From NCBI GenBank assembly GCA_004431415.1, contig QPMI01000009.1, forward strand, positions 1 through 28,181: a DNA stretch of 28,181 nt, written 5' to 3'. Shown here in pieces: positions 5,630-27,985 of this stretch. The stretch's first letter is position 1, and the number at the start of each line of letters is the position of its first letter. A program made the position numbers and the translations under genes. This stretch comes from Cyanophora paradoxa CCMP329 (taxonomy: Eukaryota; Plantae; Glaucophyta). The notes beneath the pieces are model-generated. The model saw only the letters and a program-made list of their open reading frames with translations, did not search any database and was not told where the DNA came from.

Positions 5630-6924
5630 ATGCTAGACCCGGCGCTCGAGCGTGCGCTGAAAGCGCGGAGGATCGCAAGCTCCTCTTTAAGGTCCGCCCG
5701 CCCAAGCCTCGCCCGTGTTCGTCTGCCGACCCCACCGCGCAGCTCGAAAACGAGCTGTTCGACTTCATCGATGACAAGGCGAGTGCGTCGCTATCGATTC
5801 GACTCCCCGTCGAGCTGCCTCGCGGCCCTCCCGTCCCTAGCCTAGTCACGGAGACCCGCGCCCGTCCTGCGCTGTGTACAGCATCGCTTGCGAGCCTCGC
5901 CATGCGCAGGGGCGACGCGCTTCAGTTGCCGGCGATGAGCAGCTTCCACCGCTCGCTCGTCCAGAAGACGGCGGAGCGCTTCAAGCTGCGCTGCGTGCTG
6001 GAGGGGTCCGAGATCAACCCGCAGGTGATCATCGAGCGCACTGCGAAGGCCGTCAAGCCCGCGCTGCGCTTCGTCGACTTCGTGCGCACGCCGCCTCGCC
6101 CTCGCCCAGCGCCCAGCGCCCAGCGCCCCGACGCGCGGCCGGCGGCAGATTCCGGATATGTTTGGCAAGCCGCCGCCGGTGACGCGCAAGCCGAAGCGCA
6201 CGACGCCCAAGCGGCCCGAGCTGGGCGCTACGTCCCGCCGTCGCGCCGGAAGCAGGAGCAGGCGTGAGGAGGGCGAGGAAGAGGGGGAGGAGAGGGCGAA
6301 GAGGACGAGGAGGACGAGGTCGAGGACGCGGAGGGCGAGGGCGACGGCGAGGAGGAGGCGGCCGCCGCCGCCGCCGCCGCCGCCGATGACGGGGAAGCTG
6401 AGAAGCCCAGCGGCGACAAGAGCGACGAGAAGCCGCGGAGGAGCGCTGCGAAGGAGGAAAGAGCGCCGGAGGCGGGCGCACCGGAGGGGCACGACGCGCC
6501 GCGGGAGCAGAGGCGGCGGGAGCGGGAGCGCGCGTCGCGGGGCCGCGAGTCGGAGGGCGCGCCGGCGGAGGAGGCGCCGGCCGCCGGCGGGGACCTGCGG
6601 AGCCTGATCGAGGCCCGCCGCTCCCGCGGCCGCGCCAGCGATGCATCCGAGGCCGCCGCCGACGCGCCGGCTGCCACGCCGCCAAGCCGGCGGCCCCTGC
6701 GCTGCGGACCCTCGCGGAGGCGGCGGAGGCGGGGAGCCGAGGCAGCAGCGGCCGTCTCGGGGCGGCCCTTGGGCGGCGCGGAGGCGGCGGCGGCGGCGGC
6801 AGCGGAGGGCAAGAAGGGCCGCGCGAGGAGCAGCGGGAGGCGCGGCCGAGCCGTGAGGGGCGGGAGGAGGGCGCCCCAGCGGGGGCGAGGTCCCGTCTGC
6901 GGCGGCGGCCGGCGACGAGAAGCC

Positions 6925-6958
<34 letters not shown>

Positions 6959-9589
6959 AGGGCGCGGAGGTCCATCGGGAGGGCGAGGCGGCGTCGGGGG
7001 AGGGCAGCAGCGGCCGGGGCGGCTGAACGTGCGGGCGCGCTCTTCTCGCGGCGATGGGCCTCCCGGTCACGGAGAAGCCGCCCCGAAGCCCGTCCGGCAC
7101 CGCTCCTCCGAGCGCACGAGGACCCGGCCGGCGAGGCGGCGGCGGCCCGGAGGAGGCGGCCCGGCCGGCGTCGGCCGCGGCGCGGGCGGGGGCGGGCGAA
7201 GGCGGGGCGGAGGCGCGGAGGGAGGAGGCGCCGGCGCAGCCGAAGAAGGGGGCGAGCTGGGGCGACCCGCCCGCGGCGCGGCGCTCCGAGGAGGGCGGCG
7301 ACCGGCGCGCCGGCCGCGCGTCGGGCGGCGCGGCATCCGGCGAAGCGGCGGCGCCGCCGCGCGGGGAGCGGAGGAGCGACGCGGCGCGAGAGGACGGGGG
7401 GCGGAAGGGCGCGACGTGGGGCGAGCCGGCGCCAGCCTCGGCCCGGCTGGCGCCAAGGCCGATCGGGCGGAGGCCGCGCCGGCGCGCAAGAGCGACGCCG
7501 CTCCGGCGCGCAAGAGCGACGCGGCGCAGGAGGCCCCGCCGGCCCGCGTCGGCCCCGGCCGCGAATCCCGCGCCGGCCCGGCGCGGACCCGGCCCCGGCC
7601 GCGGAGGCGGAGGCGGAGGCGGCGCCGGCGCCGGCGCCGGTGAAGAAGTCGTGGGCGGACGAGGTGGAGGGGATCGAGACGCCGCCGCGGCGCCGCTGCG
7701 GGCGCCGGCAAAGACGCGGGAGGACCCGCCCCGCGGCAGCGCGAGGAGGCGGCCCCGCCAAGCGCGGCTCCAGCTGGGGCCAGCCATCGAGCGCGCCCCG
7801 CCGAGAAGAGCTACGGCGGCAAGGCCCCCGGCGGGCGGACCGTAGCCCGCCGCGCGAGCGCGGGGCGGGGCGGGAGCGGAGCCCGCCCGCAGCGGCGGCC
7901 GCGACAGGAGCCCCGAGGGCAGCGGGGCGGCAGGCCCGAGGGCCGCGGGTCGAGCTGGGGCGGGTCCGGCGGCGACTCGTGGTCCGCTGCCCCCGCTCTT
8001 CCCCCCCTTCCTTGTCCGAGCGCCCGCGGCAGGTTCCACCACGACGAGCGGCGGGACAGCGGCAGGGGCGGGCGCGAGAGCGCCGGCGGCGGCAGCGGCA
8101 GCAGCGGCGGCGGCGGCGCCAAGGGCGGCCGGGAGAGCGGCGGCGGCGGCGCGCGGTGCGGCTTCCTTCTCCCCCTGCCCTTTCCTGTACGACATCATCT
8201 GAAAGGGCTGCACGCGCAGGGGCGGCCACGGCCACGGGCCGGCGCCCGTGCCCGTGATCAAGCCCAAGCCCCTGGCCGTGCCGAACTGGGACGCCCCGGA
8301 CCTCGGCCTCGACGCGGCCGCCAAGGCCAAGAAGGAGGGGCCGCGAGGCGGCGGCGAAGGGCGAGCGGGAGGCGCGGACGGGGGCACGTGGTACGTCAAG
8401 GACCGGAGGAGGATGAGCCGCGGCAGCGCAAGCCGCAGGCCTCGGCCTCGGCCCGGCGGCCCCGGCGGCCCGACGGCGCCCCAGGCGGGCGGCGAGGAGA
8501 AGAAGGCTTCAAGGTGCTGGACCTCACGGGGGACTCCCGCGCCCATCCCGTCCCCTCCTCCTCCTCCGCCGCCTCTTCGAAGCCAAAGGAGCGTAACATG
8601 GCGGTGCTGCTCGAGGACTACTCCGAGTTCGAGGGCGGCGCCTTCCAGGTGAGGAGGGGCCTCTCGGGGCCGACGACAGGCCTCGCCCGAGGGAGCGCCG
8701 GCGCGGCTGACGCGGCGCTGCGGCAGCGGACGCGGGGGAGTACCTCTCGGCGGGGACGGGCCAATCCTCGAGCTCCACGGGTTCGACTCCAGCCTCAAGA
8801 CGCCCCAGGTGGCCCCGCTCCTCAGGCCGCGCTCCCTTCTCGCTGCGCGGCCCCAGGGCCGATGGCACCCCAGGGCTCGCCCCGTGCCTGACCCTCCTCC
8901 GGGGCCGGTGCCGCGGGCAGATCGAGCGCTGCTGGACACGTACATCGCGGGGGCATGTGCCGCCTGAAGTGGTCGACGACACCCACTGCTCGCATCTTCC
9001 GCTCCTCCGACCTCGGTGCGCCCTTCTTACCTCTCTTGTCTCTCTCTCTCTCCCTCTCTCTTTCTGAGCCGGCGCCGCAGCGAGAACGCGCTGAGCAAGT
9101 CTCGAACCCTTCTTCAAGCTGCGGCCGCTGGCGACGCCTCCCAGGCCTCCCGCTCCGTCGCCGTCGCCGGCACTTGCTCCCCACTCCGCTATCCTCCCCC
9201 CTTCCTGACCGCCCGGGCCAGACGACGACGTCTCGTCGGCGAGCGGCCGGCGACCGACGCGACCGTCGCCCACCGCATGATCAAGGTGCCGAGCTTCTCC
9301 AGGCTGGCTGGCTGGCTGGGCCCGAGGCTCACGCCGCGGCGCGCGCGCGGGCCGCAGAACCTGCTGAACATCCGGGAGCCGCGCAAGTCGCCCGCCGAGG
9401 CCGCCGCGCCAAGGCGAGCGCGACGCCCGCGCTCCGCCGGCCGCCGCTCCGTGCGCGCTTCAAACTCCCTTCCCTTCTCGCCCCTCCTCTGCTCATCCCA
9501 ACGGGGCCGTTTCTGTTTTTGCAGGGGGCGTGACGGCGAGCCCCAAGGCGGACGGGGCGTGGGACTCCGGCGACGAGGACCAGCCGTAG
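5630..9589 (+). CDS. R3H and coiled-coil domain-containing protein 1 (R3HCC1/R3HCC1L)-like RNA-binding protein; multi-exon, many apparent indel errors
   Basis: N-terminal MLDPALERAL..EDRKLLFK|LENELFDFIDDK..LQLPAMSSFHRSLVQKTAERFKL (R3H-type); long low-complexity middle; C-terminal ILELHGFDSSLKT...RLKW(V)DDTH...IFRSSDL...LRPL..ASQASR...ERPATDATVAHRMIK matches the family RRM (IKWVDDTHA) and the RPETSAALARRLV motif; ends GAWDSGDEDQP* at 9587-9589. Several single-base frameshifts must be assumed. Confidence 0.8.
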
Positions 9590-9682
9590 CGGAGCGCCAG
9601 TGGCCCCCAATTTCGGTCTCTGCCTCCACACAGTTTTGCAAGTGCAACACAGTTACAGATCTAGAGGAAACCACGGCTGCAG

Positions 9683-12548
9683 CTAGAGGAGGGCGAGGAG
9701 GGCGGCGAGGAGGGGCAGCGCGAGGCCAGGCCCGGGGCGCCCTCCGCCGCGGGGCGGCGCCCGAGCTCGAGGGGCCATTCTGGAGGGCGGCGGGGGGCTG
9801 GAAGAGCCCGCCGGGGGGCGGCGCCAGGTCCGCCGCGGAGCCGGGGGCGCCCAGGCCGGCGAGGGCAGCGGGCTCCCGAACGCCGGCTCCCTGCCAGGCG
9901 CCTAATAAGCTGAAGAGAAGAGAGAAGAGGTTGGCTTTGGGGGTACGGGCACGGGCACCGGTCGGGGCGGAGGCGAGGCCGATGGCGCCGAGCGGCGGTC
10001 GAAGACGGGCGCGTAGCTCCGGAAGAAGAGCGCACCGAGCACGAACCCCGGCGGGCTGAGGGCTGGATCAGGAGTGGGGAGGATAGACGAGCGGGACTCT
10101 GAGAGGGGCGCACGCGCGGCTCGTGTTGCTGCGAACGAAGGTCTGGAAGCCGAAGAGGCACTCGCCGGAGCCGCCGAGGGAGGAGGGTACAGCGAAGACG
10201 TAGTCGGCGGGCTCAGGAAGATCGGCACGGGCCCGAGATCGAAAGTGATGTTCGGGAGGCGGCCCGCCCTCCCGCAGTCGAAGGGGAGCTCCGTAAAATC
10301 TCTGGTGAAAAAATGAGGGGGGCAATAAGGCGGAGGGGGGTAAGGGCGCGCGTGAAGTTGGCGGGCGGCTCCATGCCGATCGCGTCCATTAGGATCCTCT
10401 GGATTTCCACCCCGTCGTCTGATATTGTTCGATTCGGAATAAGAGAACGGGGGAATTTGAGCGAGGGGGGTACAGCAGTGCCCGCGCACCCTCCGGGATG
10501 GCGAGAAGGGAGGTTCCAGAGTCGATGACGGCGAAGCAGACGCCTTCCTCGGGGCCCCCGCAGCCGCCCTGGGCAGAAGACGATATCTTAGACTTGGGCA
10601 GAGGGCGCGGGGGGTACGGCGCACGACGGGGCGGCCGTCGAGGGTCACGTTGGCGAGGGGTACGGCCCAGTAGCTGTCGCTCGCGATGGGGGCCCAGTAG
10701 TAAGTGCGGTTCAGATCTCGCCCCCCGAAAACCATCTGAGCCGCCTTGATCATGAGCTTGAGCGGTCTTGGGGAGGGCGGGTGGGCAAAGGGGGTACGCG
10801 CGATGCTCTGGGGGCTGCGGGGTCGGAGGAGGGGGAGGGTACGAGGTAGAAGGAGGCCTCGGCGAAGGGTAGAACGTTCTGCGGGAGCCCGCTCTCAGAG
10901 CCTCGAGCTAATGATCATGATCATAGAAGAAGGGCCCGCGGACGCTCGCGTCCCGGCTGTCGTTGTGCTGCCTCTTATCGTAGGATCCCGAAGGGGTACG
11001 GTGCGCGGACCTGGAGGAAGCCGTTCTCGAGGATGGTGGCGCCCTCGTCGGCCCCGGACTCGGCGCTCGTCGGGCCCAGGCCCAAGATCCCCGAGATCGG
11101 TCCGACGTCTGAGGGCGAGGGCCCCGTGGTTCAGCGATTCGGTGGCTCAGTGATGCGAAGATTCGATGCGGGGGGGCGCCGTGCTTAAAGCAAGTAAGGG
11201 GAAGCTTGAGATATCGAGGGGGGCCGGGCGGGGGCGGGGGCGGGGCGGGGGCGGGGGCGGGGGCGGGGCGGCGCGCGGCGCTGAATGTCTCGGCGTCGAT
11301 GTGCGTCGCCAGGGCCACCGGCTGCGGGGCTAACATCAGATCGGAGATCAGATCAGACTCGTCGGAGCGAGGCTCAGATCAGATCGGCGCCCGTGACCAA
11401 AGGAGGGGAGGGGGGGAGGGGGGGGGGGGGGAGGGGAGAGAGAGGGGGGGGGGGGAGGAGGGGAGGGGGGCTTTGCTCGCCTGGTTCCTCACAGTGACGT
11501 TCCCGACGGTGACGGTGTCGACGCCGAGCTGCCCCGGGCCCCCGCCCCGCAGGCAAAGAGAGAAGGTCACACGGATCGATGGTTTCGAACTTCGGAAGGC
11601 GTTAGGGCGGACCGAGCCGAGGAAGTAGCTGCGAACGAAACAATCGGAAGCCGTCGGGGATCGGAGAGGAGGGCCAAAGAGGGGGGGTACGCGCACCCGA
11701 TGCCGTAGCGGACGGCGACCTGGGGCGGGGTCTCCCCCGCCGTGGTCGCGTTCGCGAAGGTCGAGGACGCCTGCGCCGAAACATTCTGAGGCGGTCCGGG
11801 GCGAGCAAGGGTATGTGCAGGCGCACGAAGGGGTTGAAGAGGCGGCCACCGGCGCACGACCGGTCGCAGAGGACGCTCTGGCTCATATGATCAGGTGGCA
11901 ATGTCGAAGTTCGAGCCCGGCGCGCGAGAGCGGTTCCCACCTTCACCCACGTCAGCGTACTCCCGTATCTGGAACGACACCGAAGGACTGCGGCGGGGTT
12001 CGATCGAAAGCGTGTTCAAGAGACCGACCTGCGCATGCGCGCGCGAGAATCGAACATCGAGCGCGGCGTGCGCCGGCTCCCGGCCGCGGGCGCTGGCCAT
12101 GGCCGTCGACGCCCCCGCTTGGCTGGAGACGTGCGCACAAACGAGTCGACCAGAGGCACGGCGGTCGCCCCGGGCGTAATGTTCATCGTTTTGAGTGTTT
12201 CCTGATGCACGAGCAGCTGTGCGGCGAGTGAGGAGAGAGCGCCGCAGCCAGCCGGCGCTGCAAAGAGCAGCGCGCACGCGTCGTGTTCCGCCGGCGTCCA
12301 GCGCGAACGGCTGCGCAGCGGCGGCGTGCGCGGAGAGAAGCCGGGGTGGTCCGCCGCCGGCAGCGAGCGCCTCCCGGCGCGGGCTAGCGCATCAGCGACT
12401 GTGTGACCGCATCGTAATCTCAGCGCGCCAGGGCCCGCGCGCGCCGGCCGCACCTGTTTGTCGTGGAACGGACGCTCTGTTTCTGCGCGGCGCTCACGCT
12501 GGCCGCAAGGAGAGCGAGCAGGAGAGCCGTGAAGCGTGTCGCGCGCAT
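9683..12548 (-). CDS. Pepsin-family (A1) aspartic protease with signal peptide and probable GPI-anchor signal
   Basis: Signal peptide MRATRFTALLLALLAASVSAA; TPPQSFGVVPDTG (DTG at 11961-11969); SSTF; VAVRYGIG flap; GQLGVDTVTVG; GILGLG; SYWAVPL; FAVIDSGTS (DSG at 10515-10523); LPNITF; FVLGALFFRSY..FD; C-terminus ...LALPLLAALLALL* (stop 9683-9685). Many short introns; some indels assumed. Confidence 0.9.
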
Positions 12549-12632: not shown

Positions 12633-15244
12633 ATGAAGAAGAAGGCGCAGAAGGAGGATTCCGATGCGTCCGACGCGTCCGACGCTTCCCTTGAGGAGGT
12701 TCCGGTGCGTCGCTCTCGGGCTGCGGCGCTGCCAGCGCAAAGTGAACGCCTGCGCCGCAGAAGCCGAAGCGCGCGAAGAAGGATGCGGGCGGCAAGGCGA
12801 AGCCGAACGAAGATCCGCTAGAGAAGGCGACGCGCGAGGAGTCCGCCCGCCTCGCGCGGGAAGCGTACAAGACCGAGACGCTGCGGAAGCAGCGGCCCGA
12901 CGTGTACGGCGTCCTCAAGCCGCCGCCGGGTGCCTGCGGCGGCCATTCGGGGTGCTCTGATCTGAGGCCGGGGCGTGCTGCAGCGCTGCGGAAGCTCGAC
13001 GGCTGCGACGTGGTGAAGAAAGCGCGGCAAGGCCGGCCACACGGGCCGATACCTCTTTGTCTTTCCGATGCGCGAAGCTGCCCGGTCCTCTGCGCGCGCC
13101 GAGCGCGGCCGCAGGGCGAGCTCTCGGAGGGCAAGGCGGCGGAAGATGGGGACCTGGAGCACCTGGACACCCGAACCCCGTGCTGCATTTGGAGTACCGG
13201 AGGCCGGCTGCGGCTGCGGGGCACGCTCATGTACCCCAAGCTCGGTACCTCACGCTGCAGTGCGCGCCGCGGCGCGGGTGGCCCAGTGCTCCGACCCCTT
13301 CGAGACCCTCGTCGTCTTCTCGGAGGCGAGCCGCGCGCCCTCCCTTCTCCCTGCTCTTCTCCTCCTCCTCCCCTTCCGCGCCCTCTCTGCTGACCGGGCG
13401 GCGGGGGCAGGCGCGGCGTGTGGCAAGCCGGAGGAGAACCCGGACGGCAAGCCCTGGAGCTCCCAGGCACCTCAAGTGGACGGCGCGCCGGCGCTCCCTC
13501 GTTCCCTCTCGCGCGCGCCCGTTCTGAGCGCCGGCGCGCAGGCGGAGAAGGCTGCGTCGCTTCCCAAGTCGGGCGAGCAGCAGCAGCAGCAGCGCGGCGC
13601 TCCTCCGGCGCGCCGGGGCCAGGGCCGCCCCGGCGCCGGCGGGGAAGAGAGGAGGAGGACGAGTGGAGGACGAAGCTCGGGCGGGGAGACGATGGGCGGA
13701 GCGGGGGCGGCGGCCGGCGCCCCGCGGCGGCACTCGGCGGGTGGCGGCGGACGGCCCGCAGCGCAAATCGTACAAGGAGCAGCAGGGCCGACGACGACGA
13801 GGGCGAGGGCGAGGGCGAGAGAGCGACGCGGAGGGGGGAGCGGCTCCGACGCCGGTGCGGGGGTACCCCCCTTGCGCCCGCCCTCCGCGCGGACCCTCCC
13901 GGCAGAGGCGCAGGCCCGAAACGGGGCAAGAGCAAGGCGGCGGCCGCCGCTGCGCCGTCCAAGCCGAAAGGTGCCGGCCGCAGCCCGCTCCGCGTCTCGT
14001 CTCCGGGGTACGCGGCCGACGCTGACGGGCCGACCGGGGTACAGAGCGAAGCAGCAGGCGGACTGGGGTTCCTGATGGGCGGCAAGGGCCCCGCCGCGGG
14101 CCCGGCTAAGGGCGCGCCGGTACGCGCCGCACCGCCGATCTCGTCGTGCACGCCATCCCCTGACGTCGCGTACCTCCCCCTCAGGAGGCAAGGCGGAGGA
14201 CAAGGACAAGGCGAAGAAAGACGGGGCGGAGGAGGCGAGAAGCGGGCAAGCCTGGGAAGAAGCGGGAGGGGGAGGGGGAGGCCGGGCGCAAGCCGAAGAA
14301 GTCGACGGGCGGGGAGAAGGCCGAGGAGAAGAAGAAGGCGCGCATGGGGCCGGCCGGGCCGGCCGGGCGAGCGGCGCCGTCCTGAACTCGGAATCACTCG
14401 GTGCGCAGCACCGGGAGGGGCGGCGGCGGCAGCGGCTGTCATATCACTGGACGCGAGCGACGGGGGAGGAGGAGGAGGAGAAGGAAGAGGAGAAGGGCGG
14501 CAAGGCCAGCGGCAAGAAGGGCGGGGGCAAGGCCGGCGGCAAGGGCGGCGAGGGCAAGGGGCGCGCGGGGGGCTCGGGGCCCAGCAAAGGGGGGGCCTCG
14601 GGGGCCCCCGGCGCCGCCGGGGCGCCCCCCAAGGCGAAGAGCAGCAAGCCGGTGGTCCTGGACGAGGAGGACGAGGAGGACGAGTTCGGCTTCGCGGACG
14701 CGTGCGCCCGCCCCGCCCCGCCCCGCCCCGTGCGATCCAAGCAGAGGCTGCATCGGGATTCAGACGGCCCCTAGATGGAAACAGAGGTGCTATCTAGAAT
14801 TTGGACGGCCCCAAGATGTAAATAGAGGGTTCACGAATATTTAGACGGCCCTTGGTTTGATTCGCGTGCCCCCGCAGGTGGGATGCGGTGGAGCAGCAGC
14901 GGGCCAAGGCCAAGACGCCCCCTCGCCCGGCGCCGGCGCCGGCCGCCGCGAGGGCCTCCGCCCCCTCCTCCTCCGCCGCCCCCGCTGCCCCCGCCCAGGG
15001 GCCCTCCTCCCCCGGCTCCCTCTTCGCCCCGCCCCCCCCCGCAGCCTCCGGCCCGAGCGCCAAGGCGCCCCCTTCTTCGGCGGGGGCGGGGGCGGGGCGG
15101 GCGCCAAGCAGGGACCTGGACGGCTTCCTACGGGCCAGCTCCAAGGTGCGCCCGCCGCCCCGCGCCCCCCGCCCCCGGCCCCGCCCCTGCCCCCGGCCCC
15201 GGCCCGGCCCCCGCGGCTCATCGCCGTCGCGGTCGTTCCAGTGA
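12633..15244 (+). CDS. RHL1: ROOT HAIRLESS 1-like DNA-binding protein (topoisomerase VI complex subunit) with long low-complexity C-terminus
   Basis: Spliced/indel-corrected pieces LKPPP..LRKLDGCDVVKK..RYLFVFP..GDLEHLDT.NPVLHLEY..GRLRLRGTLMYPK.RYLTLQ..QCSDPFETLVVFSE..GKPEENPDGKPLELP follow plant RHL1 as recalled (HGTDIIRK..RFLFSFPG..LSTKNPVLYL..GRMKLFGTILYPKNRYLTLQF..CDDYFDNMIVFSE..GTKEENP). The 3' end (..SRDLDGFLRASSK, TGA 15242-15244) is less certain. Confidence 0.85.
14737..14855. repeat. Intronic ~41-bp degenerate minisatellite, 3 copies
   Basis: RGACGGCCC cores at ~14762, ~14803 and ~14843, each preceded by an AGAGG motif; AT-richer than the flanks; lies in an intron ending cccccgcag at 14877. 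Confidence 0.75.
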
Positions 15245-16533
15245 ACCGCAAGCCCCGTCGCGCGCGCCAGCCTTGGATCGGAGGCTCTGGGCGGCGTGCG
15301 CGGCGGCCGCAGGGCCCGCCGCCGCGGCTCGGAGTTCACGAGTCAGCAGGCTGAGAGGCCCGGCGCGGCCCACCCCGCCGTCCGGCCGGCGCGGCCGGGC
15401 CGGCCCGCGGCCGCGACTCCCGACTCCGAGTCCGTACTACGGTATCCCGCGAGGCCGGGGCGCCCGTGTCCGACTCGCCGCGGCTTGATTGAACTCGCCC
15501 GGCCGCCGCCGAGTCGCTTGAGCTTCAATTCAGGCTTCGTGTTTAGCAATTAGAGCTGGAAGGTTCACGGTTCCCCACTTTTGGAAATTCTTCAATTGCA
15601 CATCAAACGTTGCAATTAGCCATCGCCGTCGCCATCGACGTGCGGCCCGGTCCGACGGTCCGACGGTCGACGTCCGGCAGCCCGGCCCGGGGCCGGCGCC
15701 CCGCGTCCGAACTCGGAGCCTCGGAGCTCAGAACTTGGAAGCCCGCCGCCGTCGCCCGCGGCCGGCCCGGCGGCAGGCCGCGCGCGCGGCCGCCGGGCTG
15801 GCGGCGAGCCTGGCGCCCCGCGGCGGGTCGGCCGGCGCACGGTTTACAAGTTCAGACTCTCTCAGACTTTGACGGGTACTACCACCACACAATTAACTTA
15901 CCATAACTTGAAGACTTGATCATGAAGCCGCCTAGAAGTTGAACTTGTTTAACAAATGTTGTGTTGCAAAAACTTGCAATTGAAATCACAATGAACTTGA
16001 ATGAAGTACTAGTGTAGTACTATAGTGGTAGTGCTAAAGGGCTAGTGTTACCAGAAAAAGCAAAGCTGGCCAGTACTAGTGATCGATTCAGATCGAAATG
16101 CGAAGTGATGTAAATGACGAAAAGACCACCAAAATACACGGGTGTTAGCAATTAATATTGCAATTCCTGACAACGACAAATATGAGAAACAACACACATG
16201 CATGCGAAGGGGTACGCTCTGTAACAAATAAATCGAAAACGATGTATACATGTACATGCATATGTCTCAACAAAGATAACATTGGTTTGATTTGTTTTGG
16301 ATGATAATAATTTAAAGGCTTGCACGTGCAGAAAATTAACATGTACTGTCCGATCGCGACTTCTCGATACCGATGAGAGACTATTCAGAGTCTCTGTTGA
16401 CGTCACCGAGGATCCGGAAAACCTCTGTTTACGTAAAAGTGGCCTTTCGAGGTATCGAAGGAACTGAGCTCGCGGGTCAAGCCTCAAGCCCGGCCAGGCT
16501 GGCACTTCAGCTAGCGCTGCAGCTGCAGTCTGC

Positions 16534-16587
16534 AACTGCCGGCTAACTGCCGGCTAACTGCCGGCTAGCTGCCGGCTAACTGCCGGC
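16534..16587. repeat. 11-bp tandem repeat (AACTGCCGGCT) x ~5
   Basis: Read directly; one A>G variant. Confidence 0.95.
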
Positions 16588-16796
16588 CCGGCGCGCGGCT
16601 AATTACTAAGAAAAGTTACATGCAAGTTGCAATATTAATTGGGCTCATGGTTTATCATAGTATTCTATAGCTACGTATACGATCATCGGATATCGATCGA
16701 TACTTATAATTAACTATGATAGCAGGCTGTTAATTAAATAACAGCGCCAGCTTAAGCTTGTTCACAGGCGGCTTACAGCTGCAGGCGGCTTACAGC

Positions 16797-17190
16797 TAGG
16801 GTTGGTGAATTTCATGAAATTCAAAAATTTGGCGTTGAAACTGAAAGTCGACCCTTTGAAAGCTTTGAAAATTCAATTGAAATTTCAATCCGCAGTGCAG
16901 CACTTGCAGAGACCCCACGCACTGCGGAGAGTCTCTTTCACTCTGAATTGTCTCTAATCGACTTCACTCTCACTCTCTGAGTCTCTTTACGGGCTGGGAG
17001 GGCTCCCGGGAAGGCCGGAGGGGCTGGGAAGGGAAGCTGAGCTCGAGGTGCGAAAACGGAGAAATTCAATATATTTTATTATTTTTATATTCTATTTCAA
17101 TGCAATTTCAACGGGCGGCGTTGAAATTGAAATTGAATTTTCAATTTCAATGCAATTTCAATGGCTTGAAATTTCAAGCTGCCAACCCTA
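16797..17190. mobile_element. Non-autonomous hAT-superfamily MITE, 394 bp
   Basis: Perfect TIR TAGGGTTGG (16797-16805) / CCAACCCTA (17182-17190); perfect 8-bp TSD CTTACAGC (16789-16796 and 17191-17198); dense subterminal TTGAAA/TTTCAA motifs at both ends. An 8-bp TSD with TAGGG termini is typical of hAT. Confidence 0.9.
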
Positions 17191-17833
17191 CTTACAGCTG
17201 GATTGGCGCTTAGACGGCTACGAGGCTAGATCGAATCTGGCTAGTGAGCGAGCTGCAAATTAAGCCTGCAATTAGCCTCAGCCTGCAGCTGGCAGCCTGT
17301 GGCAGCCTATAGCTAGGGCCTGCAAGTTGCCAAAAAGTTGGCTGCAACTTGCAATTGCCATGCATATGGCCATTTGCAAGTTTGCAATTTTAAAAAAATT
17401 ATGCTGCCAGTGTGAGTTTCGGAATTCGCCACCTTAAAGCTTCGAATTCGATTCGCGGCGATTTGGAAACTTGAAATTGGATCATCGGATTCGTCATGAT
17501 CAGCAATGATTCAGCATTCGGCCCGAGCGCGTGCGCGCTCATTGTTCAAGGTGCGCGCGATCGTCCGACGGTCCGGCGTCCGGCGTCCGACGGTCGCGAT
17601 CGCCGAGTCGACGCGGTCCGATCTAGCCTCGCAGGCTCGGAGGGCGCGCGCGGCGCGCCCCGCGCCGGCGGGCCGCAGCCCCCGGGCCCTGGCCGGGCCC
17701 GCCGCGGGCCGGCGCGCCCGGCCGCGGGTCGGCCAGGAGAAGGCAGCAATCGCGAAATCAGAACATCGAGACTCGGCTATGATCATCATCGTCATACCTC
17801 CGGCGGCCCTCCGCTGTGCCTCAGAGTAGGGTT

Positions 17834-17850
17834 TATTATATATATATAAA
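17834..17850 (+). promoter_or_regulatory. TATA-like tract (TATTATATATATATAAA), candidate promoter of the downstream spliced unit
   Basis: Ends in TATAAA, ~100 bp before the GC-rich exon/intron series; could equally be an (AT)n microsatellite. Confidence 0.4.
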
Positions 17851-18591
17851 TCAGACTAAATTTTGTAAATCTGGTGGATTTTCTAGCGGTTTTCATAAAT
17901 GTCTAGGCGTCGACCTAGCAGGTCGGCCTAGGTCCGGAAATTTCAGCAGGATTTCCGGGAATCCGCCGCCAGCGGCCGGCGGCCCGGCTCGCAGAGCATC
18001 CCGCGCGTTCGCACGCGCTCTCCGGCCTCTCTACAGCCTTTCCCGCACGTTCGAAATCCTGGAAAGCCCCCGCGGCTCGCCTTCTTCTCAGGCGCGGGGC
18101 CCCGCGAGCGCCAGCGTCCCGGTCCGCGCCCCGGCCCGTTCGCCTACAGCCTCGCCTTCTCGTACACGCACTCGGCGTAGTACTTTCTCACCGTGGTACG
18201 CTTCGTCCTCCCCCGCGCGCACTCCCCGCGCCCCGCGCGCCGTCGCCTCCTTCGCTGACAATCGCGACTCCACTCGCCCCGCTGCAGCCAGCGCCGCACG
18301 ACGCGCGCCCAACCGCGCACCTCATCTATGCTCTGCGCACTCTGCGAATTCACGTCCATCGTCGCCCGAGCCCTCTTCTGCGCCGCGCCCCGCTGACCGC
18401 CCCGTGCAGCACCGGCCGCTGCCGCGCGCCGCACCGCCGTCCAGCCGATCGCAGCGGGCGTGCCCGATCGTAACTCAAGCCAGCACAGCTCGTGAGAGCC
18501 CCGCCTTCCCGCCCCGCCCGCTCTAAACCGCGCCCCGCTGACCGTGCAGCATGGCCTGGGTTTCCGACACGCGCCGCCGCGCAACCAGCAG

Positions 18592-20790
18592 GTGCCGGGC
18601 CAGCGGGCGGGCCCGGGCGCGGCGGAGCGCACGCGCTGCCCGCGCGGCAGGTGCGGGGCGGCGCGGCGGCGCTGGCTGCGGTGGCCTGCGGCGATCGGGG
18701 GGCCCGCAGCAGGTGCGCCGCGCGCCGGGCGGGCGGCGGGCCGGCCCTAGGGGGCGGGCTCGCCGGCCCTTCCTGGGGAGGGCCCCGGCGCGAGGCCGTG
18801 GGTGGATACGGGGCGGGCGGCGCTCACGCGCTGGCCGTGCGGCAGGTGCGGGGCGCGCGGCGGCGCTGGCGGCGGCGGCCTGCGGCGATCACGGGGCCCG
18901 CAGCAGGTGCGCCGCGCGCCGGGCGGCGGCGGGCCGGCTCTAGGGCGGGCCTCGCAGCCCTCCTGGGAGGGCCCAGCGCGGGCCGGCGGGCGGTACGGGC
19001 GGGCGGCGCTCACGCGAGGGCCCCGGCGCGGGCCAGCGGGCGGTTACGGGCGCGGCAGCGCTCACGTGCTGGCCGTGCGGCAGGTGCGGGCGGCGTCGCG
19101 GCGGCGCTGGCGGCGGCGGCCTGCGCGTTGGGGGGCCCGCAGCAGATGCGCGCGCGCCGGGCGGGCGGCGGGCCGGCCCTAGGGGCGGGGCTCGCCGCCT
19201 TCCTGGGGAGGGCCCCGGCGCGAGCCGGTGGGCGGGTACGGGGCGGGGCGGCGCTCACGCGCTGCCGCGCGCAGGTGCGGGCGGCGGGCGCGCTGGCGGC
19301 GGCGGCCTGCGGCGATCGCGGGGCCCGCAGCAGGTGCGCCGCGCGCCGGGCGGGCGAAGGGCCGGCCCTAGGAGGTGGGGCCTCGCCGGCCCTCCCTGGG
19401 GAGGCCCGGCGCGGGGCCGGCGGGCGGTACGGGGCGGGGCGGCGCTCACGCGCTGGCCGTGCGGCAGGTGCGGGGCGGCGCGGCGGCGCTGGCGGCAGCG
19501 GCCGGCGGCGATCACGGGGCCCGCAGCAGGTGCGCCGCGCGCCGGGCGGCGGCGGGGGGCTCTAGGGGGCGGGGCCTCGCCGCCCTTCTGGGAGGGCCCC
19601 GGCGCGGGCGGTGGGCGGGTACGGGGCGGCGGCGCTCACGCGCTGGCCGTGCGGCAGGTGCGGGGCGGCGTCGCGGCGGCGCTGGCGGCGGCGGCCTGCG
19701 GCGATTGGGGGCCCGCAGCAGATGCGCGCGCGCCGGGCGGCGGGGGCCGGCCCTAGGGGCGGGCCTCGCCGGCCCTCCTGGGAGGCCCGGCGCGGCCGGC
19801 GGCAGGCCCGGGCGCGGCGGAGCGCACGCGCTGCCCGCGCGGCAGGTGCGGGGCGGCGCGGCGGCGCTGGCGGCGGCGGCCTGCGGCGATCGCGGGGCCC
19901 GCAGCAGGTGCGCGCGCGCCGGGCGGGCGGCAGGGCCGGCCCTAGGAGGTGGGCCTCGCCGGCCTTCCTGGGGAGGGCCCCGGCGCGGGGCGGCGGGCGG
20001 GTACGGGGCGGGGCGGCGCTCACGCGCTGGCCGTGCGGCAGGTGCGGGGCGGCGCGGCGGCGCTGCGGCGGCGGCCGGCGGCGATCACGGGGCCCGCAGC
20101 AGGTGCGCCGCGCGCCGGGCGGGCGGCGGGGCCGCCCCTAGGGGGCGGGGCCTCGCCGGCCCTTCCTGGGGAGGGCCCCGGCGCGGGGCCGGTGGGCAGG
20201 CCGGGGCGCGGCGGAGCGCACGCGCTGCCCGCGCGGCAGGTGCGGGGCGGCGCGGCGGCGCTGGCGGCGGCGGCCAGCGGCGATCGCGGGGCCCGCAGCA
20301 GGTGCTCAGCGCGCCAGGCGGGCGGCGGGGCCGGCCTCTAGGTGGCTGGGCCTCGCCGGCCCTTCCTGGGGAGGGCCCCGGCGCGGGGCTGGCGGGCGGG
20401 TACGGGGCGGGGCGGCGCTCACGCGCTCCCTGCGGCGCAGCTGCGCGGCGTTGCGGCGGCGCTGGCGGCGGCGGCCGGCGGCGATCACGGGGCCCGCAGC
20501 AGGTGCGCCGCGCGCCGGGCGGGCGGCGGGGCCAGCCCTGGGGGACGGGCCGGCGCCGGCCCTCCCTGGAGAGGGCCCCGCGCGGGGCCGGCGCGGCGGT
20601 ACGGGGCGGGGCGGCGCTCACGCGCTCCCTGCGGCGCACCTGCGCGGCGTCGCAGCGGCGTGGCGGCGGCGGCCGGAGGCGATCGTCGGGCCCGCAGCAG
20701 GTGCGCCGCGCACCGGGCGGGCGGCGGGGCCGGCCCTGGGGGGCGAGGCCTCGCCCGCCGTTCCTGGGGAGGGCCCCGGCGCGGGGCCGG
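18592..20790 (+). repeat. Tandem array A: ~11 copies of an extremely GC-rich ~190-200-bp unit (62-nt CAG|GTGCG..CAG| segment plus ~135-nt segment)
   Basis: The ~62-nt segment starts at ~18651, 18846, 19084, 19275, 19468, 19658, 19846, 20042, 20240, 20441 and 20640; CTAGG marker spacing is 189-201 bp, with one 238-bp unit carrying an internal partial duplication. Confidence 0.95.
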
Positions 20791-23700
20791 CGAGGGCCCT
20801 ACGAGCGCACGTCGACGCAGAGAGATTCTAAATATGGCCTGGGTCTGACCGCTGCGCGCGCAGGGACCCACGCCCCCTGCCCCCGCCGCCCCCTGAACCC
20901 GGTACCCCTGGTGCGAGCCCCGGGCCGTGCTCCCCGCTAGCTGATGGCCCGGCGAGGGCCCTACGAGCGCACGTCGACGCAGAGAGATTCTAAATATGGC
21001 CTGGGTCTGACCGCTGCGCGCGCAGGGACCCACCCCCCTGCCCCCGCCGCCCCCTGAACCCGGTACCCCTGGTGCGAGCCCTGGGCCGTGCACCCCGCCT
21101 GCCGATAGCCCCGCGAGGGCCCTACAAGCGCGCGTCGACGCATAGAGATTCTAAACATGGCCTGGGTCTGACCGCTGCGCGCGCAGGGACCCACGCCCCC
21201 TGCCCCCGCCGCCCCCTGAACCCGGTACCCCTGGTGCGAGCCTCGGGCCGTGCTCCCCGCCCGCCGATGGCCCGGCGAGGGCCCTACAAGCGCACGTCGA
21301 CGCAGAGAGATTCTAAATATGGCCTGGGTCTGACCGCTGCGCGCGCAGGGACCCACCCCCTTGCCCCCGCCGCCCCCTGAACCCGGTACCCCTGGTGCGA
21401 GCCCCGGCCGTGCTCCCCGCCCGCCGATGGCCCGGCGAGGGCCCTACGAGCGCACGTCGACGCAGAGAGATTCTAAACATGGCCTGGGTCTGACCGCTGC
21501 GCGCGCAGGGACCCACGCCCCCTGCCCCCGCCGCCCCCTGAACCCGGTACCCCTGGTGCGAGCCTCGGGCCGTGCTCCCCGCCCGCCGATGGCCCGGCGA
21601 GGGCCCTACGAGCGCACGTCGACGCAGAGAGATTCTAAACATGGCCTGGGTCTGACCGCTGCGCGCGCAGGGACCCACGCCCCCTGCCCCCGCCGCCCCC
21701 TGAACCCGGTACCCCTGGTGCGAGCCCCGGGCCGTGCTCCCCGCCCGCCGATGGCCCGGCGAGGGCCCTACGAGCGCACGTCGACGCAGAGAGATTCTAA
21801 ACATGGCCTGGGTCTGACCGCTGCGCGCGCAGGGACCCACCCCCTTGCCCCCGCCCCCTGAACCCGGTACCCCTGGTGCGAGCCCCGGGCCGTGCTCCCC
21901 GCCCGCCGATGGCCCGGCGAGGGCCCTACGAGCGCACGTCGACGCAGAGAGATTCTAAACATGGCCTGGGTCTGACCGCTGCGCGCGCAGGGACCCACGC
22001 CCCCTGCCCCCGCCGCCCCCTGAACCCGGTACCCCTGGTGCGAGCCCCGGGCCGTGCTCCCCGCCTGCCGATGACCCGGCGAGGGCCCTACGAGCGCACG
22101 TCGACGCAGAGAGATTCTAAATATGGCCTGGGTCTGACCGCTGCGCGCGCAGGGACCCGCCCCCCTTGCCCCCGCCGCCCCCTGAACCCGGTACCCCTAG
22201 TGCGAGCCCCGGGCCGTGCTCCCCGCCTGCCGATGACCCGGCGAGGGCCCTACGAGCGCACGTCGACGCAGAGAGATTCTAAATATGGCCTGGGTCTGAC
22301 CGCTGCGCGCGCAGGGACCCACGCCCCCTGCCCCCGCCGCCCCCTGAACCCGGTACCCCTGGTGCGAGCCCCGGGCCGTGCTCCCCGCTAGCTGATGGCC
22401 CGGCGAGGGCCCTACAAGCGCGCGTCGACGCATAGAGATTCTAAATATGGCCTGGGTCTGACCGCTGCGCGCGCAGGGACCCACCCCCCTTGCCCCCGCC
22501 GCCCCCTGAACCTGGTACCCCTGGTGCGAGCCCCGGGCCGTGCTCCCCGCTAGCTGATGGCCCGGCGAGGGCCCTACGAGCGCACGTCGACGCAGAGAGA
22601 TTCTAAATATGGCCTGGGTCTGACCGCTGCGCGCGCAGGGACCCACGCCCCCTGCCCCCGCCGCCCCCTGAACCCGGTACCCCTGGTGCGAGCCCCGGGC
22701 CGTGCTCCCCGCTAGCTGATGGCCCGGCGAGGGCCCTACAAGCGCGCGTCGACGCATAGAGATTCTAAATATGGCCTGGGTCTGACCGCTGCGCGCGCAG
22801 GGACCCACCCCCCTGCCCCCCCCCCCCCTGAACCCGGTACCCCTGGTGCGAGCCCCGGGCCGTGATCCCGCTAGCTGATGGCCCGGCGAGGGCCCTACAA
22901 GCGCGCTTCGACGCATAGAGATTCTAAACATGGCCTGGGTCTGACCGCTGCGCGCGCAGGGACCCGCCCCCCTTGCCCCCGCCGCCCCCTGAACCTGGTA
23001 CCCCTGGTGCGAGCCCCGGGCCGTGCTCCCCGCCCGCCGATGGCCCGGCGAGGGCCCTACAAGCGCGCGTCGACGCATAGAGATTCTAAATATGGCCTGG
23101 GTCTGACCGCTGCGCGCGCAGGGACCCACCCCCCTTGCCCCCGCCGCCCCCTGAACCCGGTACCCCTGGTGCGAGCCCCGGGCCGTGATCCCCGCTAGCT
23201 GATGGCCCGGCGAGGGCCCTACAAGCGCGCGTCGACGCATAGAGATTCTAAACATGGCCTGGGTCTGACCGCTGTGCGCGCAGGGACCCACCCCCCTGCC
23301 CCCGCCGCCCCCTGAACCCGGTACCCCTGGTGCGAGCCCCGGGCCGTGCTCCCCGCCCGCCGATGGCCCGGCGAGGGCCCTACGAGCGCACGTCGACGCA
23401 GAGAGATTCTAAATATGGCCTGGGTCTGACCGCTGCGCGCGCAGGGACCCGCCCCCCTTGCCCCCGCCGCCCCCTGAACCTGGTACCCCTGGTGCGAGCC
23501 CCGGGCCGTGCTCCCCGCCCGCCGATGGCCCGGCGAGGGCCCTACAAGCGCGCGTCGACGCATAGAGATTCTAAACATGGCCTGGGTCTGACCGCTGCGC
23601 GCGCAGGGACCCACGCCCCCTGCCCCCGCCGCCCCCTGAACCCGGTACCCCTGGTGCGAGCCCCGGGCCGTGCTCCCCGCCCGCCGATGGCCCGGCGAGG

Positions 23701-26700
23701 GCCCTACGAGCGCACGTCGACGCAGAGAGATTCTAAATATGGCCTGGGTCTGACCGCTGCGCGCGCAGGGACCCACCCCCCTTGCCCCCGCCGCCCCCTG
23801 AACCCGGTACCCCTGGTGCGAGCCCCGGGCCGTGCTCCCCGCCCGCCGATGGCCCGGCGAGGGCCCTACGAGCGCACGTCGACGCAGAGAGATTCTAAAC
23901 ATGGCCTGGGTCTGACCGCTGCGCGCGCAGGGACCCACCCCCCTGCCCCCGCCGCCCCCTGAACCCGGTACCCCTGGTGCGAGCCCCGGGCCGTGCTCCC
24001 CGCCCGCCGATGGCCCGGCGAGGGCCCTACAAGCGCACGTCGACGCAGAGAGATTCTAAATATGGCCTGGGTCTGACCGCTGCGCGCGCAGGGACCCACC
24101 CCCCTTGCCCCCGCCGCCCCCTGAACCCGGTACCCCTGGTGCGAGCCCCGGGCCGTGCTCCCCGCCCGCCGATGGCCCGGCGAGGGCCCTACGAGCGCAC
24201 GTCGACGCAGAGAGATTCTAAACATGGCCTGGGTCTGACCGCTGCGCGCGCAGGGACCCACGCCCCCTGCCCCCGCCGCCCCTGAACCCGGTACCCCTGG
24301 TGCGAGCCCGGGCCGTGCTCCCCGCCCGCCGATGGCCCGGCGAGGGCCCTACGAGCGCACGTCGACGCAGAGAGATTCTAAACATGGCCTGGGTCTGACC
24401 GCTGCGCGCGCAGGGACCCACGCCCCTGCCCCGCCGCCCCTGAACCCGGTACCCCTGGTGCGAGCCCCGGGCCGTGCTCCCCGCCCGCCGATGGCCCGGC
24501 GAGGGCCCTACGAGCGCACGTCGACGCAGAGAGATTCTAAATATGGCCTGGGTCTGACCGCTGCGCGCGCAGGGACCCACCCCCCTGCCCCCGCCGCCCC
24601 CTGAACCCGGTACCCCTGGTGCGAGCCCCGGGCCGTGCTCCCCGCCCGCCGATGGCCCGGCGAGGGCCCTACGAGCGCACGTCGACGCAGAGAGATTCTA
24701 AACATGGCCTGGGTCTGACCGCTGCGCGCGCAGGGACCCACGCCCCCTGCCCCCGCCGCCCCCTGAACCCGGTACCCCTGGTGCGAGCCCCGGGCCGTGC
24801 TCCCCGCCTGCCGATGACCCGGCGAGGGCCCTACGAGCGCACGTCGACGCAGAGAGATTCTAAATATGGCCTGGGTCTGACCGCTGCGCGCGCAGGGACC
24901 CGCCCCCCTTGCCCCCGCCGCCCCCTGAACCCGGTACCCCTAGTGCGAGCCCCGGGCCGTGCTCCCCGCTAGCTGATGGCCCGGCGAGGGCCCTACGAGC
25001 GCACGTCGACGCAGAGAGATTCTAAATATGGCCTGGGTCTGACCGCTGCGCGCGCAGGGACCCACCCCCCTTGCCCCCGCCGCCCCCTGAACCCGGTACC
25101 CCTGGTGCGAGCCCCGGGCCGTTGTCCCCGCTAGCTGATGGCCCGGCGAGGGCCCTACAAGCGCGCTTCGACGCATAGAGATTCTAAACATGGCCTGGGT
25201 CTGACCGCTGCGCGCGCAGGGACCCGCCCCCCTTGCCCCCGCCGCCCCCTGAACCTGGTACCCCTGGTGCGAGCCCCGGGCCGTGCTCCCCGCCCGCCGA
25301 TGGCCCGGCGAGGGCCCTACAAGCGCGCGTCGACGCATAGAGATTCTAAATATGGCCTGGGTCTGACCGCTGCGCGCGCAGGGACCCACCCCCCTTGCCC
25401 CCGCCGCCCCCTGAACCCGGTACCCCTGGTGCGAGCCCCGGGCCGTGATCCCCGCTAGCTGATGGCCCGGCGAGGGCCCTACAAGCGCGCGTCGACGCAT
25501 AGAGATTCTAAACATGGCCTGGGTCTGACCGCTGCGCGCGCAGGGACCCACCCCCCTGCCCCCGCCGCCCCCTGAACCCGGTACCCCTGGTGCGAGCCCC
25601 GGGCCGTGCTCCCCGCCCGCCGATGGCCCGGCGAGGGCCCTACGAGCGCACGTCGACGCAGAGAGATTCTAAATATGGCCTGGGTCTGACCGCTGCGCGC
25701 GCAGGGACCCGCCCCCCTTGCCCCCGCCGCCCCCTGAACCTGGTACCCCTGGTGCGAGCCCCGGGCCGTGCTCCCCGCCCGCCGATGGCCCGGCGAGGGC
25801 CCTACAAGCGCGCGTCGACGCATAGAGATTCTAAACATGGCCTGGGTCTGACCGCTGCGCGCGCAGGGACCCACGCCCCCTGCCCCCGCCGCCCCCTGAA
25901 CCCGGTACCCCTGGTGCGAGCCCCGGGCCGTGATCCCCGCTAGCTGATGGCCCGGCGAGGGCCCTACAAGCGCGCGTCGACGCATAGAATTCTAAACATG
26001 GCCTGGGTCTGACCGCTGCGCGCGCAGGGACCCACGCCCCCTGCCCCCGCCGCCCCCTGAACCCGGTACCCCTAGTGCGAGCCCCGGGCCGTGCTCCCCG
26101 CCTGCCGATGACCCGGCGAGGGCCCTACGAGCGCACGTCGACGCAGAGAGATTCTAAATATGGCCTGGGTCTGACCGCTGCGCGCGCAGGGACCCACGCC
26201 CCCTGCCCCCGCCGCCCCCTGAACCCGGTACCCCTGGTGCGAGCCCCGGGCCGTGCTCCCCGCCCGCCGATGGCCCGGCGAGGGCCCTACAAGCGCACGT
26301 CGACGCAGAGAGATTCTAAATATGGCCTGGGTCTGACCGCTGCGCGCGCAGGGACCCGCCCCCCTTGCCCCCGCCGCCCCCTGAACCCGGTACCCCTGGT
26401 GCGAGCCCCGGGCCGTGCTCCCCGCTAGCTGATGGCCCGGCGAGGGCCCTACGAGCGCACGTCGACGCAGAGAGAGATATTGGCCTGGGTCTGACCGCTG
26501 CGCGCGCAGGGACCCACGTCCCCTGCCCCCGCCGCCCCCTGAACCCGGTACCCCTGGTGCGAGCCCCGGGCCGTGCTCCCCGCTAGCTGATGGCCCGGCG
26601 AGGGCCCTACGAGCGCACGTCGACGCAGAGAGATTCTAAATATGGCCTGGGTCTGACCGCTGCGCGCGCAGGGACCACGTCCCCTGCCCCCGCCGCCCCT

Positions 26701-27278
26701 GAACCCGGTACCCCTGGTGCGAGCCCCGGGCCGTGCTCCCCGCCCGCCGATGGCCCGGCGAGGGCCCTACAAGCGCACGTCGACGCAGAGAGATTCTAAA
26801 TATGGCCTGGGTCTGACCGCTGCGCGCGCAGGGACCCGCCCCCCTTGCCCCCGCCGCCCCCTGAACCCGGTACCCCTGGTGCGAGCCCCGGGCCGTGCTC
26901 CCCGCTAGCTGATGGCCCGGCGAGGGCCCTACGAGCGCACGTCGACGCAGAGAGATTCTAAATATGGCCTGGGTCTGACCGCTGCGCGCGCAGGGACCCA
27001 CGTCCCCTGCCCCCGCCGCCCCCTGAACCCGGTACCCCTGGTGCGAGCCCCGGGCCGTGCTCCCCGCTAGCTGATGGCCCGGCGAGGGCCCTACGAGCGC
27101 ACGTCGACGCATAGAGATTCTAAATATGGCCTGGGTCTGACCGCTGCGCGCGCAGGGACCCACGCCCCCTGCCCCCGCCGCCCCCTGAACCCGGTACCCC
27201 TGGTGCGAGCCCCGGGCCGTGCTCCCCGCTAGCTGATGGCCCGGCGAGGGCCCTACAAGCGCGCGTCGACGCATAGAG
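20786..27278 (+). repeat. Tandem array B: ~40 highly homogeneous copies of a 162-bp satellite unit
   Basis: GATTCTAAA marker at 20824, 20986, 21147 ... ~27116; the unit carries GTCGAC and GGTACC sites; variation is confined to a few recurrent positions and homopolymer lengths. Confidence 0.98.
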
Positions 27279-27295
27279 GTCATTTGTGCTTCGAT

Positions 27296-27985
27296 GCACA
27301 TGTGTACATGTACATGAGGTGATGCATATGGGCCCGCGGATCCACGCCAGGGCACCCCAGGACGGGCCCCGCGCCCGAATCGGAGCACTGGGAAACAACA
27401 TGTATTATACATGGATTCATAATCTATAAGATGAGCTTGGAACGCCGCGCGTGAGACACAAGGCCGGCCTCGAGGGAGTGAGGGGGGCAAGTGAGGTGAT
27501 CGGCCCGCGGAACCACGCCAGGCTAGGGCACCCCAGGACGGGCCCCGCGCCTGCTTCGGGGCACTGAGACACAACTTTTACGGAACATCGATTGCGAATC
27601 CAGAACATGAGCCGAGGGCCACGGGCGCAAGACAAAAGGCCCGCCTTGAGGGAGTGAGTGGTGCACATGTGTACATGTACATGAGGTGATGCATATGGGC
27701 CCGCGGATCCACGCCAGGGCACCCCAGGACGGGCCCCGCGCCCGAATCGGAGCACTGGGAAACAACATGTATTATACATGGATTCAGAATCTATAAGATG
27801 AGCTGGGAACGCCGCGCGTGAGACACAAGGCCGGCCTCGAGGGAGTGAGGGGGGCACATGAGGGAATGGGCCCGCGGAACCGCGCCCTTTCTCCCCAGGG
27901 CGGGCCCCGCGCCCGAATCGGAGCACTGGGAAACAACCTGTATTACATAGGGATTTAGAATATATAAGATGAGCTAGGGGTGCAG
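27296..27985. repeat. Tandem array C: 367-bp dimer of two diverged monomers (171+196 bp), ~2 dimers
   Basis: GGCCCGCGGA marker at 27331, 27502, 27698 and 27869; 27296-27490 is nearly identical to 27662-27857. Confidence 0.9.

Follow-up and report, generated by a model that had tools for sequence, protein, structure and literature searches.

Dscam1 genes carry clusters of diversified exon copies, and one exon per cluster enters the messenger RNA (mRNA). The exons of such clusters lie in tandem, have lengths that are not multiples of three and are accompanied by complementary intronic elements (PMC4835542). In the SNORD115/SNORD116 host array and in rat Bsr, repeated non-coding exon-intron units stand in one orientation, each intron carries a C/D small nucleolar RNA (snoRNA) with both boxes, and the RNA is abundant (PMC8162545, PMC4063771). 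Tandem exon duplications, reviewed for human genes (PMC8373072), consist of an exon plus chimeric intron unit with breakpoints in successive introns; splice signals are copied with the unit, and the copies are homogenised by unequal exchange. Here we analyse a stretch of 28,181 nt (the window) from contig QPMI01000009.1 of the alga Cyanophora paradoxa CCMP329. Positions 17834-27278 of the window had been predicted, from the letters alone, to be a transcription unit of about 9 kb with some 55 introns, made of tandemly amplified exon-intron cassettes and possibly serving as an intron host of the SNORD115/116 kind.

The cassette anatomy and its splice signals were confirmed, and 55 introns were counted in total, five of them segments in the head of the locus and the others in two parsed arrays, A and B. 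The closest of the described systems is tandem exon duplication, with which the locus shares the points just listed; it differs in having 11 and 40 copies instead of 2-3, two adjacent modules, exon lengths that are not multiples of three and no expression that could be found. On balance, and with moderate confidence, we favour the reading that the locus is a gene-derived minisatellite, in which two adjacent exon-plus-intron modules of a duplicated gene relic were amplified 11 and 40 times and brought their splice signals with them.

Structure and origin of the tandem arrays

Splice sites were scored with matrices for donor, branch site and acceptor, for which 34 introns from four flanking genes served as the training set; most introns of the neighbour gene at 12633-15600 were backed by RNA contigs, and the remainder were curated by eye. 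When each true intron was left out in turn, the median score was 18.6 bits and the 90th percentile 21.8 bits. GC-AG introns made up 9 of the 34. The introns of array A (18651-20800, plus strand) score 22.6 bits and those of array B (20787-27278, plus strand) 22.7 bits, each being the top-scoring parse of its unit. Shuffled units reach 13.1±2.2 bits for A (p<0.004) and 14.3±3.0 bits for B (p=0.003), and the minus strand of the arrays is no better than its shuffles (p=0.55 and 0.77). The predicted strand bias was thus borne out, with arrays that beat shuffled units (p≤0.003) and a minus strand at chance, and the repeat unit, as in tandem exon duplication, comprises an acceptor, an exon and a donor with a common orientation that score above chance. 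A gene on the minus strand was considered and rejected, its models lying at shuffle level without codon or synonymous support; the idea had arisen from the plus-strand branch motif, which reads as a GTGAG donor on the opposite strand, and was compatible with part of the variants.

Array A contains 11 exon copies of 59-64 nt, most often the predicted 62 nt, separated by introns of ~136-139 nt at a period of ~198, with units 88% identical; Tandem Repeats Finder reports a 198-bp array reaching 20792. Its signals match the local consensus, as had been claimed, but not all of them are intact: donors have changed from GT to AT in 2 of 11 units and an acceptor from AG to AC in 1 of 11, and branch sites are degenerate in 3 of 11. 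The two copies with AT donors share further variants. Splicing is not being maintained in array A. Judged by identity (88% against 96%), A is the older array.

Array B has 40 exons, 29 of them of the predicted 47 nt, with introns mostly of 115 nt, a period of 162 and 96% identity; Tandem Repeats Finder places 40.2 copies of a 162-bp unit at 20787-27278. The first B exon lies at 20864-20910 (plus strand), and its second frame translates into a 15-residue Pro-rich peptide. The last intron is truncated (27203-27278, plus strand): its donor at 27203 is followed by no strong acceptor, and the array stops abruptly. Divergence between units has minima at lags of 14 and 17, which indicates block duplications of 14 and 17 units, and a 46-nt exon haplotype occurs in units 2, 13, 16, 20, 24 and 30, including copies 14 units apart. 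This shorter exon reflects either a true frameshift or a C7 run that is systematically called one base short; few length errors occur in other C/G runs. Head-to-tail homogenised copies at 96% identity, with higher-order blocks, are the features of a satellite. No further B copies were found in viral or metagenome contigs. Array B has one GTAC[CG]C word per unit, or about 6 per kb; the flanking genes have 0-5.6 per kb and intergenic stretches 0-1.3 per kb, and the density in B would loosely fit an origin from a gene body.

Sequence comparison of the introns points to how the modules arose. A single intron of 163 nt (20701-20863, plus strand) is a hybrid of the 5' half of the A intron and the 3' half of the B intron, and we infer that it is the unamplified ancestral intron. 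The A intron is itself chimeric, joining the 5' half of 20701-20863 to the 3' half of the fifth head intron (18592-18650); the B intron takes its 3' half from the 3' half of 20701-20863, and its right parent is cut off at 27278. Chimeric introns of this kind are expected from tandem duplication with breakpoints in two successive introns.

The ancestor would have been an ordinary multi-intron gene of RNA polymerase II, or a relic of one, in a low-copy duplicated segment, with the order exon 5, intron 5, exon 6 (62 nt), intron 6 (163 nt), exon 7 (47 nt) and intron 7. Unequal crossing-over at short G/C-rich matches between introns 5 and 6 would have duplicated exon 6 with chimeric flanks, and a similar event between introns 6 and 7 would have duplicated exon 7. 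Repeated unequal exchange and conversion may then have produced 11 and 40 copies, with the end of intron 7 lost where the array stops at 27278. Splice signals in a single orientation would be inherited with the unit and are therefore not evidence of function, and the amplification would have broken the reading frame because neither exon is a multiple of three in length. The locus would now behave like a satellite, as the block duplications, the spreading 1-nt deletion, the decay of splice sites in A and the failure to see its RNA suggest. If it were transcribed, the spliced RNA of ~3 kb would carry an open reading frame of at most ~265 codons followed by dozens of junctions, and would probably be a substrate for nonsense-mediated decay. 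In the unamplified order, the codon-favoured frames of exon 5 and the A exon join the synonymous-favoured frame of B without a shift. Such continuity, as from a coding ancestor, is a weak pointer, with a chance expectation of about 1 in 9. Read in this way, the locus would be a snapshot of a gene turning into satellite DNA, in which amplifying an exon and its intron gives rise to junk if the exon length cannot be divided by three. The locus also carries a caution: strong splice signals in a tandem array may be inherited and need not mean function.

Several observations weigh against a gene-derived minisatellite. Donors are GT in 40 of 40 B units, none of the 14 core splice columns of B varies among 39 units (p=0.06), and 1 of 26 varies in a wider set (p=0.03). 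Such invariance is a hint of constraint, though it would also be expected in a young array. In the B frame that reads DPRPLPPPPPEPGTP, 4 of 5 exon variants are synonymous (p=0.022, or 0.083 over three frames). A TA tract, rare in the window, lies where a promoter would be expected. Finally, the placement of RNA contigs covered the head and the first A unit (to 18860), which limits what it can say about transcripts of the arrays. The splice sites of B, which do not vary, its bias towards synonymous change and the TA tract leave some room for readings in which the locus is a condition-specific gene, either a 55-intron non-coding RNA releasing 39 near-identical, stem-closed introns of 115 nt as a new class of small RNA or a repeat-protein gene of ~100 introns in which micro-exons of 1-10 nt in every unit keep the frame; taken together, we regard these as unlikely. 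If RNA showed regular splicing, the locus would rank as an algal equivalent of the tandem intron-host arrays of mammals or as an unusual gene with serial micro-exons, and would deserve far more attention.

The head region and its transcription

Contigs from one DNA run and from three runs that appear to be RNA, of unknown condition, were placed on 12905-18860; the RNA contigs can show presence but not absence, and small RNAs would not appear in them. The head, which lies left of array A, had been described as unique. Its DNA contig depth (162-333) argues otherwise, since single-copy DNA here has a depth of ~70-97, and its fifth intron-like segment is the 3' half of an array-A intron. Depth is 161.7 over 17726-17892, the left edge of a multi-copy segment with about 2 copies there and ~4 further right, 332.6 near 17964-18070 and 176 at 18384-18631. 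These depths suggest that the head exists in 2-4 or more genomic copies, and variant DNA contigs are also present over it.

Multiple copies with diverged relatives are also what one would expect if head and arrays were the cargo of a non-autonomous DNA transposon (hAT/CACTA), with the arrays as internal satellites and the TA tract and hairpins of the head as sub-terminal elements, not a promoter. A further point in its favour is that the sequence from 17827 shares its first 7 bases with the terminal repeat of a hAT-like element at 16797-17190. Nevertheless, the window shows no matching right terminus, no terminal repeats enclosing the locus and no target-site duplication, although a right end beyond 28181 is possible, and the two-copy segment starts ~100 bp left of 17827. 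A transposon alone would also leave the splice signals unexplained, although it is compatible with a gene-derived minisatellite. We consider it very unlikely. The hAT-like element itself is a miniature transposon with 9-bp perfect terminal inverted repeats, AT-rich inverted sub-terminal repeats and an 8-bp target-site duplication (16789-16796 and 17191-17198); its DNA depth of ~1500-2300 corresponds to roughly 20 copies.

The TA tract (17837-17850, plus strand) is a TATA-like element and candidate promoter, one of two such tracts in the window against ~0.06 expected; position 17839 within it is C in Illumina contigs. It had been proposed as the start of the transcription unit. The tract is indeed rare, but it is not established as the 5' end because stronger plus-strand intron-like segments lie upstream of it, at 17551-17634 (26 bits), 17712-17824 (20 bits) and 15640-15731 (21 bits). 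All three lie in apparently intergenic DNA, the segments 17551-17634 and 15640-15731 have a short repeated motif in common, and RNA contig depth is zero across 15890-16486. The tract is followed by a leader with three short hairpins (17855-18036, plus strand; fold z=-2.0, equalled or bettered by 8 of 200 shuffles) and without an Rfam match.

The five predicted head introns are present as segments of 58, 92, 56, 58 and 59 nt on the plus strand, each scoring 11-15.5 bits with weak donors. As a chain they score 23.9, compared with 17.1±6.0 for shuffles (p=0.11), so that the head does not stand out as the arrays do; two real genes reach 38.7 and 45.8 (in-sample, p<0.01). The first exon-like segment (18037-18091) may begin at the transcription start, because it has no good upstream donor, and is followed by a GC-AG intron-like segment (18092-18149, 58 nt, 11.0 bits). 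Exon-like segment 2 (18150-18195, 46 nt) precedes a 92-nt intron-like segment (18196-18287, 13.6 bits) with good branch site and acceptor and a weak donor. Exon-like segment 3 (18288-18353, 66 nt) is followed by an intron-like segment of 56 nt, again with a weak donor (18354-18409, 13.6 bits), and exon-like segment 4 (18410-18491, 82 nt) by one of 58 nt (18492-18549, 15.5 bits). Exon-like segment 5 (18550-18591, 42 nt) holds the only useful ATG, at 18551, and the fifth intron (18592-18650) measures 59 nt, or 61 nt once corrected with reads.

The antisense strand of exon-like segment 2 (18150-18195, minus strand) gives 15 codons that score 0.62, a coding-like value exceeding every one of 300 intergenic control windows and 97% of those taken from introns; it is possibly a captured or relic coding fragment, for which a homologue was not found. 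Searches with open reading frames of the head returned no homologues from Pfam, metagenome contigs, the ESM Atlas or either of two protein searches. Synonymous changes are not in excess among the variants that separate head paralogs. A word of 11-12 nt that starts exon-like segment 5 (18551-18561) recurs just before the branch site of every B intron, where it forms one arm of the B intron stem; overall similarity is not above controls. A derivation of the B unit from head intron 4 together with exon 5 was rejected, as the alignment score is 39.5 and unrelated true introns reach 40 and 44.

The claim of a transcription unit found no support in the RNA contigs: in three runs that contain the neighbour gene in spliced form, none was seen to be spliced across the head or the first unit of A. 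That gene is seen exon by exon in all three sets at contig depths of 5-26 and serves as a positive control. RNA contig depth across exon-like segments 3 and 4 is 0, 0 and 2 in the three sets. No head splice junction appears among the matches listed, and the predicted unique junction 18491/18550 was not seen in the RNA contigs. According to the run index, which is insensitive for exons of 47-62 nt, almost no words from 17500-21300 occur in the RNA runs. The only long piece from the RNA sets (18009-18174, depth 2.5) is a diverged paralog with 15 differences that runs unspliced through intron-like segment 1 and may be DNA; RNA depth near the first A exon is estimated to come from short matches of other GC-rich contigs. 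The arrays are probably silent at present.

Non-coding and coding readings of the arrays

A functional spliced non-coding RNA, which would release many identical introns as a snoRNA or microRNA (miRNA) host or would form a repetitive scaffold, draws on the strong plus-strand splice signals of the arrays, the invariant B splice sites, the TA tract and a stem that closes every B intron. This stem is an inverted repeat of ~13 bp (20916-21008, plus strand in the first B unit), in which the 5' end of the B intron (20916-20929) pairs with the stretch before the branch site (20995-21008) in all three folds, with z only -0.1 to -0.5. The premature stops followed by many downstream junctions also resemble snoRNA host RNAs, and the alga has small RNAs and predicted miRNAs (PMC3700990).

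Hosts of tandem C/D snoRNAs have two sequence marks, box C (RUGAUGA) and box D (CUGA), for which the ideal position is ~50 nt upstream of the branch point (PMC8162545). Box C is present in none of the A or B units and CUGA is absent from A; the sole CUGA of B is the branch site itself, and not ~50 nt upstream of it where intronic C/D snoRNAs sit. Rfam gave only chance matches even at E=5, and no transfer RNA or known RNA family was found. The introns fold with z of -0.1 to -1.6 into branched structures no better than shuffles. Folds and Rfam revealed no H/ACA two-hairpin structure or long hairpin of a miRNA precursor, the H and ACA boxes not having been scanned separately. Introns and exons are equally variable (Fisher p=0.58 and 1.0), splice sites have been lost in A, and spliced RNA over the head was not seen. 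The proposed analogy with SNORD115/116 and Bsr thus extends to repeated units in one orientation and stops there: unlike those arrays, the locus has introns of only 115-137 nt without a C box, not conserved above exons, and with no RNA seen. The host-gene reading has no positive support, and a functional non-coding RNA of either kind appears quite improbable.

It had been argued that the array product would be largely non-coding, as neither exon length is a multiple of three. Joined B exons do reach stops, 11-18 per frame, and the longest ATG frame of the predicted joined model has 265 codons and is of low complexity. The argument overlooks, however, models in which a micro-exon splits the intron and restores the frame. 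In B, a micro-exon of 10 nt (introns of 46+59 nt), of 1 nt (57+57 nt) or of 16 nt would do so, as would a donor 16 nt further down that lengthens the exon to 63 nt; in A, a micro-exon of 7 nt would split the intron into 70+59 nt. All the micro-exon models require weak GAG acceptors and GC donors (10-13 bits, compared with 22.7). An example of the A candidate lies at 20174-20180 (plus strand, GAG acceptor, GC donor, ~70+60 nt), and the 10-nt candidate of the first B intron (46+10+59) at 20957-20966 (plus strand), with sites intact in 38 of 39 units; both are weak and no RNA was seen for either. The two share the same first five bases after the GAG acceptor and are followed by a GC donor. Non-coding status is therefore not proven, because weak-site micro-exons would close both frames and the variants of B are mostly synonymous.

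On these models the locus would be a conditionally expressed repeat-protein gene whose frame is closed by hidden micro-exons (7 nt in A; 10, 16 or 1 nt, or a 63-nt exon, in B). From the ATG at 18551, its product would be a protein of ~1,000 residues with 11 Arg/Ala-rich repeats of 23 residues followed by 40 Pro-rich repeats of 16-21 residues. The two-exon models that stay in frame yield introns of modal size (46+59, 57+57 and 70+59 nt), the candidates share their starts and sites, and the ATG at 18551 belongs to that frame of A which leads into the Pro-rich frame of B. Beyond the 4 of 5 synonymous variants in the B exon, the fifth is an R>P change in the Pro-rich frame. Both array periods are multiples of three, and micro-exons of ≤15 nt are commonly missed (PMC8831610).

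Besides the weakness of the internal sites, the frame required in A has 3 of 14 variants synonymous and the worst codon use of the three plus-strand frames. Codon use of exons 3-5 and the array exons on the plus strand is -0.2 to +0.05 in the best frames, compared with 0.40±0.34 for true exons. Unless it is a systematic C7 under-call, the 46-nt exon found in six copies of B would break the frame as early as unit 2. If it is real, two of the five variants drop from the synonymous count, as they could be indel artefacts of that event. An E>K change would fall in 16 of 39 micro-exons. Reading frames taken from the window are in general fragile because its G/C runs contain many 1-base under-calls relative to Illumina contigs, with ~31 gaps per kb in the neighbour gene. 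For the frames tried, no real homologues were found with genomic stretches or single exons as queries, and RNA was not seen. A repeat-protein gene of this design is improbable, and present-day coding in general appears to us no more probable than that.

Unspliced coding repeats were also rejected, although both periods are multiples of three: 14 of 39 units contain a stop in the open plus-strand frame of B, synonymous variants number 1 of 15 in the plus frame and 5 of 15 in the open minus frame, and a HMMER search over 1.8 billion proteins returned only two unrelated repeat proteins.

The unamplified frame relations admit one further possibility, that the arrays are mutually exclusive exon clusters in the manner of Dscam, with one A and one B exon per mRNA and competing pairing of intron arms driving the choice. 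Spliced to a single B exon, a single A exon continues the reading frame of exon 5, given the frames that codon use and synonymous change favour, and each B intron has complementary arms. The 40 B exons would nevertheless encode only two or three peptide variants, with almost no gain in diversity, and donor and branch site lie too far apart for steric exclusion. A stop interrupts that frame in exon 4, and no downstream constant exon is evident. Compared with Dscam1-type clusters (PMC4835542), the copies here are near-identical, and flanking constant coding exons and expression were not found. We regard this design as the least credible of those considered and would be very surprised to find it true.

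Genomic setting

The C. paradoxa genome comprises 100 Mb with 9.2 introns per gene and a mean intron of 86 bp, in a PacBio assembly with many antisense open reading frames (PMC6704402), and the window is GC-rich, intron-dense algal DNA. The four flanking genes encode a WD40-like protein (1-1365, minus strand, weak Pfam matches), an R3H-domain protein (5630-9600, plus strand, Pfam E=4e-6), a pepsin-like aspartyl protease (9900-12060, minus strand, with a DSGT motif in translation and no Pfam match for single exons) and a lysine/acidic low-complexity protein (12633-15600, plus strand), the expressed and spliced neighbour gene mentioned above. RNA pieces at 13971-14046 and 14700-14877 in the latter interval point to GAG as the acceptor at 14046 and GC as the donor at 14700.

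To the right of array B, a third tandem array (27295-27980) consists of 3.5 copies of 171-191 bp, with a higher-order duplication of 367 bp and many palindromes; its splice signals are not above chance. A gene-like region at 1650-4100, low in GC, AT-richer and without the GTAC[CG]C word, contains a tandem duplication of 368 bp (3227-3963, 91% identical), which may be another duplication of an exon and its intron.

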